A stretch of DNA of 64,000 bases. Source: Camelus ferus (lineage: Eukaryota). The stretch spans positions 930,001-994,000 of the forward strand of contig NC_045720.1 of assembly GCF_009834535.1 (NCBI RefSeq). Direction: 5' to 3'. This document shows, one piece after another, positions 15,701 through 18,531 of the stretch; position 1 is the first letter of the stretch, and every line of letters starts with the position of its first letter. The notes under the pieces are model-generated. The model was not told the origin of the DNA. It saw only the letters and a list, made by a program, of their open reading frames with translations, and made no database searches. The translations under genes and the position numbers were made by a program.

Positions 15701-18531
15701 GACATGTCCACAAAATGCCATCTGGGCCTTTCAAAGTTCAATTTCTTCCACCAGCCCCCAGCGTGGCCTGCTTCCAGCAGGAGTCCACCAAGAGGGGCGA
15801 CTGGGTCCATCTTCTCCACAGACCAACCCAGGCAAGCTCCTCTGAGCATGCTGGCTGGGGGCTGGGGTGCTCAGTGTGGGCAGAGGCCAGGGACCCCTAT
15901 GGTGGTTGGGTTAGGATTGTCTGGGGCCAGTGAGCGTCTTGTCTGGATGGTGAGTGCGTCTGGGAATGCAGCTCCTAGCCCCGTGGGCTGGAGTTGGAGT
16001 TTCTGCGAGCAGGGGTGGACGGGGTGGGACGGTGTGGGGGGCACCGGTGCCCGCCCAGGGCAGGACCAGACTCGTCGCTACACACAGCCAGCGGTCTGGC
16101 TGCCGAGAGTCACCTCCTCCAGTTTCTCTCTGTCTCCCTCCCTGTCTGGCCAAAGGGGCCTGTGCCCGTGCAGTCCTGCGCCGTGTCAGCATGTTAGTCA
16201 GCCTTTGCGCCCGGGTGACGAGCCGCCGCGCCGCCGAGTCCTTGTAAACTCCCTGGCGTGGCCCAGCCCGCTGAGTGGGGCCTGTGAGGCCCACAGACAG
16301 AGCCCAGGCCAGAGCCTCAGCGCTGTGGGCACCAGCCAAGGGGAAGGGCAGACCCAAGGGGCCGCAGCAGCAGAGGGCCCACCGTGGCCTCCCAGGGTTG
16401 CCCTCTGAGCCCACCTGATCGAGGCCGGCCAGCCGATGAGCCGGGGCCCCCAGGGAGCAGACACCTGGTAAAACAGGCACCAGATCGGAGCCATGTCTGG
16501 GAAACGAAGTCGAGCTCGCAAACCCCGGGCCAGGAAGGCGGGCAGGGCACGGCAGGCCACAGGGCAACAGGGCCCTGAGGCCAAGCCCCCGCCCCCCGCC
16601 ACAAGGGGCCCTGGGGACCAGGCGGGGGTGGCCCCTGTGGGGCACGTGACCAGCAGCAAGCTGGCTCCCCGGGGACACCCCAGGGTGGCCAGACCAGAGC
16701 GACCACAGGTAGCCAAGCGGCCAGAGCAGGCCGCTGTACTGGGCTCTGAGCTGGCGCTAGTCCCTGCTGCGGGCATGGAAGGCTGTGGGGCAGAGGACCT
16801 CATGCCAGGCCTGGTCCCCGAGCTGCTGAGGCTGCATGAGGTCCAGCTGTGCCTGGCCCAGGAGCAGCTGCTGCTGGAGGACCGCCGGCGGCAGGTCCAG
16901 CTGCAGATGCAGCTGTGGCAGGAGGAGCAGCTGTGGCTGCAGCAGCTGTGGCAGGAGGAGCAGGCCTGGGTGCGCGTGGAGGGGCTGGAGCTGGCTATGG
17001 CCCTGGAGCAACTCCGGAGTGAGGGCCTCGAGGAGCTGCAGACCCAAGGCCAGGTAAGGCCTGGAGGCGACGTAGGGGGTGGGGGAGGCCCCTGACAGTC
17101 CGTGGGGGTGTGGTGACCATGCGATCAACTGACAGGTCCTGCAGAGGGCCGGAAGGCCGGAGTCCAGCCGACTGTGCGTTGCGGCACATCTGGGGGCCGC
17201 ATATTCACATTTGCAAGGTGAGGCTGGTGCCCACCGTACTGCAAAGACCATGTGACAGACCTCGCAGGCCGGCCCAATGCTCAACAGCCAAGGGCACCCA
17301 GGGAGGGTGCTTGTTCAGGGAAAGTGAGGCAGAGGTGTGCCTGCAGAGGACCCAGGCCTCCTGGCCAGGTGGGCCGGGGCAGTGCTTGGGATGCTCAGGG
17401 TGCGGGCCAAGTTGAGGGCCTAGGTGGATGGTCAGCAGGTAGCAGAACTGAGGAATACCCACCCCCCACCGCCCTGACACATATTCCTGGCTGGCGTACT
17501 GGTCCACCTGCCCTGCCTCCTGTTTATTGCAGAGCCTGTTCCCAGGGCTTCAGATGGCGGAAGCAGCACGCGCCTGAGCCTGTCATCCTCATTCCAGGAG
17601 GGCTACCGCCTCAGACGCGGCTGGGGCTATTCTGGGGAATTAGGGTCTAACTCGGCTTGGCATGGAAGAGTAGTGACCATGATCCTGCTGGGCCCTGCGA
17701 TCTGGGAGCCCTCTGGGGTCCAGGCCCACTCCAGGCAGAGGGACTGCATCGGAGGAACAGAGGACAATGCTCCCATACCAAGTACAGACCCCAGTACAGG
17801 CCTGGGTGCTGGAAAGACCCAGAGCCACAGCCTGGAAGATGTTGGCCGCTTAGCTGAGAAGTCAGATGAGTGCCGTGACAGAGAAGAAATGGGACACAGA
17901 GAAGAGGAGTGACAACGGGTGGAGTAGGGGTGGAGGAGGTGCTCTTCCCAGCCCATAGCAGGCCTGAGCCAAGGGGAAGCCATCACCATTCAGCCTGAAA
18001 GTGGCTCAGGAGAGGGTGGCCTGAGGGAGCAGCAGTAGACAAGGAAAAGCACAGGATGGCCCAGGTGGAGCAGAGGGTCAGAGTGGACCACATACTTAGT
18101 CTGAGAATCCCCAACATGGATTCCAGCCCTGCTCTATTTCAGAATCCATATTCAGTCCACACAGGCCTGCTTCTCATTTCATGTGTTCTAAAGCTGTGCT
18201 CCTCTGAACACTGTCCCTGGAACCCAGCCCCAGCCCTGGGGTACAAGACTCAGGGTCAGGGTCTGGAATGGACATCTGAGCTCTGAATCCTCAGTCCACT
18301 ACACCCATGCCCAACTCAGAGCTCCCCTGAAGGCCATTCTCAGAGGGAAGGGTCTTTCCAGAGGGAGTGTCCCTGGGTGGCTGCACAGCATGTGTCACAG
18401 GTCAGAGGTGGAGTGGGGGCCCCAGAGGTCAGAGGTTCACACTCACTGGCAGCAGTTCTCGGCTTGGCTCTGGGGACGGACATCTGCCACTTCCTTGACA
18501 CAGCTTTGGGCGCTCCTTTCTTGCTGCTTAT
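721..18531 (-). CDS. IQANK1: IQ motif and ankyrin repeat-containing protein 1, partial (3' exons lie left of the window; 5' end carries lesions)
   Basis: Exons (- strand): 18447-18535 ([28 protein letters not shown]), 14855-14944 ([29 protein letters not shown]), 1393-1526 (IQ motif, [18 protein letters not shown]), 1155-1325, 924-1103 (ankyrin, [20 protein letters not shown]) and 721-846 ([25 protein letters not shown]). Junctions are GT-AG and phase-consistent, except the acceptor of the 14855-14944 exon. Peptides match human IQANK1 as recalled, and the gene is head-to-head with FAM83H as in human. Confidence 0.9.
3234..3340 (+). mobile_element. MER53-like hAT MITE fragment
   Basis: TAGGGTTGCCAGATTTAGCTAATAAAAATAC terminus and TTTATCTGAAATTCAAAT internal motif, as recalled for MER53. 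Confidence 0.6.
3338..3450 (-). mobile_element. tRNA-Ala(AGC)-derived SINE (camelid vic-1-like)
   Basis: Reverse complement of the TAGCTCAAGTGG...CTTAGCATG...GGGTTCAAT core, with an A-rich tail. Confidence 0.85.
3600..4240 (+). mobile_element. Ancient L1 ORF1 fragment
   Basis: A-rich decayed ORF1-like text (GAACCAAATGGAAATTC, GAGCTCAATGGATAACAGAATAGAC). Confidence 0.6.
4275..4985 (+). mobile_element. Artiodactyl/camelid L1 3' end (contains an N gap)
   Basis: ORF2 C-terminal QPLWKTV...[11 protein letters not shown], plus the 3'UTR ending ACATTGTAACTGACTATACTTCAA; the same 3'UTR recurs at 55930-56250. Confidence 0.85.
4457..4648. other. Assembly gap (N run)
   Basis: 192 N inside an L1. Confidence 1.
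5350..5960. promoter_or_regulatory. Orphan CpG island in an IQANK1 intron, continuous with an L1 fossil
   Basis: Dense CpG with GC boxes; grades into L1 ORF2 endonuclease-like sequence at ~5960. Confidence 0.55.
5960..7130 (+). mobile_element. Old L1 ORF2 endonuclease fragment followed by an L1 3' end
   Basis: EN-domain-like text (CATAGCTGGAGACTTCAGC, GAAATCATA...GGGTCAAAGGAGAAATCAC), then the 3' end ATCCATTGACAGATGAC...GGTTACCAAAGGG. Confidence 0.7.
7531..7620 (-). mobile_element. tRNA-Ala-derived SINE
   Basis: A and B boxes, TTAGCA loop, A-rich tail. Confidence 0.85.
8915..9170 (+). mobile_element. ERVL pol (reverse transcriptase) fragment
   Basis: Decayed match to recalled ERVL RT text (...CACCAGAAGCAGTTTGCTT...; HQKQFAF motif). 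Confidence 0.65.
9240..10500. mobile_element. L1 ORF2 RT fragment (-, 9240-9790) joined to an L1 5'UTR-like fragment (+, 9790-10500)
   Basis: [24 protein letters not shown] on the - strand; CACAAAATTTCACATGCTCCAGGACCCAGG-type L1 5'UTR text on the + strand. Confidence 0.7.
10520..12170 (+). mobile_element. ERVL internal fragments (3' end at 10520-10800; gag/pro/pol start at 11290-12170), with LTR-like sequence between
   Basis: Matches recalled ERVL text (GTTAACTGTGCACCGGGGAAGGGG...CAGACCTTTTGAGGGCTGCTAGA; GCCCAAGTCCATCTCCCACAGG; CATCAAAGACTTGA). Confidence 0.6.
12170..13760 (+). mobile_element. L1 (L1MB-like) ORF2 3' part and 3'UTR, interrupted
   Basis: AAATTAACTCAAAGTGGACCACAGACCTAAACGTGAAA...; CAGCTTTATTCGTAATTGCCAAAAC... 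Confidence 0.8.
12436..12510 (-). mobile_element. tRNA-Ala-derived SINE inserted in an L1
   Basis: Same core sequence; interrupts L1 ORF2 sequence. Confidence 0.85.
14400..15360. promoter_or_regulatory. Intragenic CpG island over an IQANK1 exon, directly upstream of the nested + strand ORF
   Basis: High CpG density; GC boxes GGGGCGGGGCGGGG at ~15335; short tandem ACGCGGGCAC repeat at ~14732-14760. Confidence 0.6.
16493..17577 (+). CDS. Putative nested antisense gene in an IQANK1 intron: basic N-terminus plus Q/E/L-rich coiled coil (~201 aa); possibly the remnant of a longer ORF starting at 15704
   Basis: ATG at 16493; strong donor CAG|GTAAGG at 17053/17054; polypyrimidine acceptor TTTATTGCAG| at 17532; terminal exon 17533-17577 ([14 protein letters not shown]). 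Helical segment [39 protein letters not shown]. Confidence 0.4.

Follow-up and report, generated by a model that had tools for sequence, protein, structure and literature searches.

What does the long plus-strand open reading frame (ORF) that runs antisense inside an intron of IQANK1 encode in Camelus ferus? The question concerns a stretch of 64,000 nucleotides, the window (contig NC_045720.1, positions 930,001 to 994,000 of the forward strand, assembly GCF_009834535.1), to which all the coordinates given here refer. Working from the letters alone, the original prediction had proposed a nested gene at this place, either intact and encoding a 201-residue protein or of about 464 residues and recently disrupted by nonsense changes. 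The sequence features on which it was built were all found in place: an acceptor whose cag ends at 15700, followed by an ATG at 15704; a + strand frame that in camel stays open from there to 17053 save for a TGA at 16406-16408 and a TAA at 16469-16471; a second ATG at 16493; a phase-0 donor, CAG/GTAAGG, after 17053; and a + strand acceptor (...ttattgcag) ending at 17532. The composition attributed to the product, a basic N-terminus and a helix rich in Q, E, L and W, was also as described. Our comparative analysis upholds the proposal in part: 16493-17053 codes for protein on the + strand, antisense in an IQANK1 intron, yet not as an independent gene. Judged from sequence, this segment is very likely an upstream, alternative coding exon with which a long isoform of FAM83H begins.

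The same strand carries FAM83H 7.3 kb downstream of the exon, with the FAM83H exons at 24328-28957 (+). A profile of the upstream exon was searched against 1.84 billion representative proteins with no limit on their length, and matched the 1236-residue isoform X1 of Cavia FAM83H, whose first 50 residues are the last 50 of the exon. The cluster of this protein also contains the Heterocephalus X1 isoform (1370 residues) and a Fukomys FAM83H (1381 residues), both with the whole exon. Among the matches of the profile search that bear a species name, all were placental. A region-restricted search with the Heterocephalus protein as query then gave 23 long FAM83H proteins carrying the extension, among them those of siamang (X1), donkey, sheep, pig, pangolin, seven bats, hedgehog, rhinoceros, dugong and elephant shrew. 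The carriers also include the 'Protein FAM83H' of Camelus dromedarius (P0100, 1377 residues), whose residues 1-187 are 99% identical to the exon of the window and are followed by [11 protein letters not shown]; within the exon a single residue differs (V/M, in the helix). The other long FAM83H proteins that were aligned, from rodent, primate, donkey, bat, sheep, dugong and elephant shrew, are 74-85% identical to the exon. Aligned to the window with tblastn, the dromedary protein covers 16493-17053, 24328-~24798, 25553-25720, 25807-25929 and 26122-28957, all on the + strand. Since it maps exon by exon onto the window, the candidate nested gene corresponds to the annotated exon with which the coding sequence of a long FAM83H isoform starts. 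It is thus known from annotation, in the dromedary and, under the name FAM83H or FAM83H isoform X1, in more than 20 other placentals, and does not constitute a new gene.

Between the upstream exon and exon 2 of FAM83H lies an intron (17054-24327, +) that contains a conserved block at 17533-17650, a homologue of an IQANK1 exon on the minus strand and a CpG island at ~20.5-21.5 kb. Exon 2 begins after a cccccag acceptor with 15 nucleotides (24328-24342, +) that read VPGPD in the long isoform and belong to the 5' untranslated region (UTR) of the canonical one; they are followed at 24343-24798 (+) by the canonical start ([10 protein letters not shown]...) and the remainder of exon 2, the 3' end being approximate. 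In seven out of seven species this 15-nucleotide leader is free of stops and in frame before the ATG at 24343. Splicing of 17053 to 24328 would yield a product reading ...[16 protein letters not shown]..., and the five-residue linker was found in every annotated long isoform aligned. The long isoforms of dromedary (1377 residues), Heterocephalus glaber (XP_021106377.1), Symphalangus syndactylus and Pteropus alecto share the exon, the donor and this linker into the canonical Met. Canonical FAM83H, or SACK1H (1179 residues in human), shares with them exons 2-5, the whole SACK1/DUF1669 domain and the C-terminal tail, whereas it lacks the N-terminal extension of ~192 residues and its exon 1 is non-coding. 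The order IQANK1(-), exon (+), FAM83H (+) recurs in Sigmodon, Megaptera, Vulpes, Panthera, Rhynchonycteris, Saguinus and Cavia, with the exon 6-7 kb upstream of FAM83H. We infer that the 17053 to 24328 junction is used in camel tissue.

The coding character of the exon (16493-17053, +, 187 codons) was assessed in an alignment of the camel window with the orthologous DNA of six other species, Sigmodon, Megaptera, Vulpes lagopus, Panthera tigris, Rhynchonycteris and Saguinus; a protein search restricted to similar lengths had recovered 42 placental-mammal homologues of the 200-residue ORF. The ATG at 16493 is kept in all seven species, in the context GCCATGT, and the 187-codon frame contains no stop in any of them, its length always being a multiple of three. 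The donor, which had been described as strong, keeps its GTAAG in seven of seven species (17054-17059, +, phase 0), the bat having GTAAGA and the other six GTAAGG. Within the exon, 11 of 11 pairwise indels have a length divisible by three, against 15 of 91 in 16020-16492 and 14 of 85 in the intron. The Nei-Gojobori (NG86) ratio of nonsynonymous to synonymous substitution rates (dN/dS) was 0.41 in the frame of the ORF and 0.95-1.0 in four control frames. The remaining frame, -1, is antisense and has its wobble positions in common with the ORF frame; it gave 0.50 and is interrupted by stops in 5 of the 7 species. Antisense coding was accordingly rejected as the source of the conservation, this being the sole antisense frame with a low ratio. 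Under a GY+F3X4 codon model, the maximum-likelihood omega over the exon was 0.33, with 2dlnL = 79.8 relative to omega = 1; by part, codons 1-105 gave 0.70, and the helical C-terminal part, codons 106-187, gave 0.105. The intact frame, the restriction of indels to multiples of three and the frame specificity of dN/dS together establish the exon as coding. On this comparative evidence, 16493-17053 is translated in some context, and the 187-codon exon is under purifying selection across placentals, strong in the helix.

For the FAM83H long isoform we propose the following scheme. Transcripts would start at a conserved TATA-type promoter ~250 bp before the exon ATG and take in the whole 187-codon ORF; the phase-0 donor after 17053 would be spliced to exon 2 at 24328, and translation would pass through the 15-nucleotide leader of that exon, read as VPGPD, to reach the canonical Met at 24343. 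The product would be an isoform of ~1370 residues, made of canonical FAM83H preceded by ~192 N-terminal residues: a strongly basic, disordered segment resembling a nuclear localization signal (NLS), under weak constraint, and an amphipathic helix of ~70 residues under strong constraint. Several points weigh against the assignment of the exon to FAM83H. Taken alone, the in-frame leader of 15 nucleotides is not long enough to demonstrate coding constraint, and codons 1-105 are close to neutral evolution (omega 0.70). The long isoforms come from annotation models, of which many were made computationally, and RefSeq treats the same ORF in tiger, lion, hyena and Kogia as a small gene of its own. 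The FAM83H papers PMC12757458, PMC5041083, PMC11986100 and PMC7284315 cover the 1179-residue form only, and our search of the FAM83H literature, including one for an alternative first exon, found no study of the long isoform.

The best surviving alternative is an independent gene of ~200 residues, nested antisense in IQANK1 intron 1 and expressed from its own transcript, instead of or alongside the FAM83H long isoform. Such a transcript would end either by intron retention (200 residues, stop at 17093-17095) or with the exon beginning at 17533 (201 residues). Stand-alone RefSeq or GenBank models of this kind exist in tiger, lion, hyena, Kogia, humpback, arctic fox, bat, Sigmodon and Saguinus; a conserved promoter-like block lies directly upstream of the ORF, and the AG of the 17532 acceptor is kept in seven of seven species. 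The block that it opens (17533-17650, +) includes the final exon originally proposed at 17533-17577 and is itself conserved, with a mean identity to camel of 0.79 over 17550-17649 against ~0.5-0.6 in the flanking intron. Its reading frame is nevertheless not kept, 12 of its 17 indels not being multiples of three. The acceptor of the proposed final exon is conserved, while the 201-residue product, which depends on the frame of that exon, is unsupported as a conserved protein. The predicted tails after the donor differ between every species and model, leaving no conserved C-terminus: in the Sigmodon model the 17533 block is a terminal coding exon in the frame first proposed, and the Saguinus model uses another acceptor. 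The alignment, inspected short of a systematic scan, showed neither a conserved donor nor a conserved AATAAA after the block. Annotations that link the exon to FAM83H are much more numerous, and that of the camel genus itself is one of them. We thus regard an independent gene as improbable, although a separate small-protein transcript is possible as a minor or additional product. The 17533-17650 block may be an optional non-coding or terminal exon.

The stand-alone models carry names of their own. The tiger protein XP_042828914.1, the hyena protein XP_039109955.1 ('histone-lysine N-methyltransferase 2D-like') and the lion 'uncharacterized protein LOC122210985' are orthologues of the same ORF, 70-77% identical to it; unlike the FAM83H fusion, the KMT2D-like models are stand-alone proteins with species-specific tails. 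A KMT2D-like identity was rejected, since the ORF has no SET, PHD or FYRN/FYRC domain and no Pfam family at E <= 1. The KMT2D name is a misnomer that reflects the Q/L-rich composition only. Annotation pipelines disagree on this ORF, making it either a first exon of FAM83H or a separate "KMT2D-like" gene. ESM Atlas look-alikes of the ORF were limited to weak, unrelated matches (<= 0.61).

A second alternative is that the ORF arose by chance in GC-rich non-coding DNA, for instance in a 5' UTR or promoter conserved for regulation only. The original prediction had itself cautioned that such DNA produces long ORFs by chance, and this was borne out: several ORFs of 200-258 residues occur on both strands in the 65-70% GC region around the exon, so that ORF length alone does not go beyond chance. 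Moreover, non-coding DNA at 16050-16350 matches the ORF in nucleotide conservation. What decides against chance is the way in which the exon has changed. Its substitutions are frame-specific (omega 0.33 versus ~1 in the four control frames, the other low frame, -1 at 0.50, having stops in 5 of 7 species), its indels are exclusively multiples of three, and both the ATG and the donor are kept. We give this explanation very little weight, and the comparative data exclude it.

The ~464-residue gene running from 15704 to 17053 and recently hit by nonsense C>T changes has next to no credibility and is refuted by the comparison of species: although the camel frame is broken by two stops only, and the codon equivalent to the 16469 stop is a sense codon in Kogia and Mastomys, where it adds 19 codons, the TGA at 16406 is common to all seven species, a TAA or TGA stands at the 16469 position in 5 of 7, 76 of the 91 indels across 16020-16492 (which takes in the 15704-16405 stretch from 16020 on) break the frame, 15607-15860 is unalignable between species, and no Pfam family was found for the upstream 234-residue piece. 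With such a distribution the two stops are ancestral and not recent C>T changes, and the frame across 15704-16405 is not conserved. Just before the exon, a conserved ATG at 16436, 57 nucleotides before the main ATG and in the same frame, opens an upstream ORF of 11 codons in camel (16436-16471, +), closed by the TAA at 16469-16471. In Kogia and Mastomys, the frame from the equivalent ATG stays open, and annotation places the start there.

Returning to the FAM83H first coding exon, its presumed promoter was sought in the conserved DNA upstream. A CpG island had been announced at 14.4-15.36 kb and does exist (~14.3-15.4 kb, GC content 0.68-0.77, observed/expected CpG 0.6-0.77). Its proposed role as promoter was not retained: the promoter-like conserved sequence is instead of TATA type, at ~16.18-16.25 kb, within a conserved non-coding block at 16.05-16.35 kb upstream of the exon ATG. 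This block contains a pair of TCAGC-type motifs (16183-16203, +), near-invariant in the seven-species alignment and resembling AP-1/MARE sites, an assignment to transcription factors that is itself putative, and a TATA-like element (16242-16250, +), conserved in the alignment and located ~250 bp before the exon ATG. The TATA-like element reads TATAAA in the six other mammals and TGTAAA in camel. Transcription would start at about 16.27-16.28 kb, with a 5' UTR of ~215 nucleotides.

A second GC-rich region resembling a CpG island occupies 20500-21500 in the long-isoform intron (GC content 0.55-0.68 in 1-kb windows, with masked N at 20742-20969). It lies ~3 kb upstream of FAM83H exon 2 and could be the promoter of the canonical exon 1 or an antisense promoter of FAM83H-AS1/IQANK1. 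The rodent X1 models, which start at Mets internal to the upstream exon, suggest that the non-coding exon 1 of canonical FAM83H may be the 16493-17053 exon shortened at its 5' end rather than an exon located in the 20.5-21.5 kb CpG island. The description of human FAM83H exon 1 could fit the truncated-exon and the CpG-island placements alike, and the FAM83H-203 transcript is reported to overlap IQANK1 (PMC12757458).

At the protein level, the extension adds its ~192 residues directly before the SACK1/DUF1669 domain. Residues 1-105 are basic, rich in Pro, Ala and Gly and predicted to be disordered, with a net charge of +10 over residues 1-21. An AlphaFold2 model, poor overall (mean predicted local distance difference test score, pLDDT, of 39.8), leaves residues 1-106 disordered and folds 107-176 into one long helix; the pLDDT block means are 78-89 over residues 111-150, and 74, 64 and 56 in the next three ten-residue blocks. 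A heptad check, admittedly crude, gave a best-register a/d occupancy of 0.59 against 0.54 +/- 0.05 after shuffling, a value reached by 559 of 2000 shuffles, and so gave no confirmation of a canonical coiled-coil register. At 16915-16960, the helix carries a 10-11-residue unit ([11 protein letters not shown]), and the number of its copies varies by species: camel has one copy fewer than most, tiger several more and humpback fewer, the difference always being a multiple of three nucleotides.

FAM83H is a CK1 scaffold, in which the SACK1/DUF1669 domain anchors CK1 and the tail binds keratin. The protein partitions between keratin filaments and nuclear speckles (PMC5041083, PMC11986100). The extension may alter how FAM83H associates with itself or how it is distributed between keratin filaments and nuclear speckles. 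More tentatively, and with less than even confidence, a TATA/AP-1-type promoter of its own would drive the long isoform, to which the conserved helix (omega about 0.1) and the basic, NLS-like head of the extension would lend a distinct behaviour, through constitutive targeting to the nucleus or nuclear speckles or through self-association mediated by the helix; alternatively, the exon would also give a free protein of ~20 kDa. If the long isoform does behave in this way, it would help to set the site of CK1 anchoring in epithelia, as a regulator so far unstudied, and would represent a blind spot in the interpretation of FAM83H variants in amelogenesis imperfecta. The experimental FAM83H papers that we found, on the CK1 scaffold, keratin organisation and dominant amelogenesis imperfecta, leave it unconsidered. 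As a discovery the exon carries small weight: it is already annotated in FAM83H, and the finding is an ordinary one.

The location of the exon inside intron 1 of IQANK1, antisense to it, was confirmed. The homologue of the first coding exon of IQANK1 lies at ~18240-18570 on the minus strand, as obtained by mapping the tiger exon onto camel, and in the tiger and guinea-pig IQANK1 models the first coding exon is likewise downstream of 16493-17053. These models begin with MSSKK... and MNTKM...SGKRQ, respectively. At 18529-18531 (-), the camel homologue reads ATA in place of the start ATG of tiger and guinea pig. Translation of camel IQANK1 may begin at another site, or the 18529-18531 start may have been lost. 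The bat and Sigmodon models of IQANK1 place its first coding exon, on the minus strand, at 15362-15607. This segment, at the edge of the upstream CpG island, is 76-81% conserved in all six comparison mammals.

Two minor observations concern the rest of the region. A scan of 14-25 kb with Rfam for intronic microRNAs returned only a sub-threshold HOTTIP_3 match, probably due to chance. In the last FAM83H exon of the window, the tblastn alignment of the dromedary protein switches reading frame at ~28496-28503, for which an assembly error and a real frameshift are both possible.

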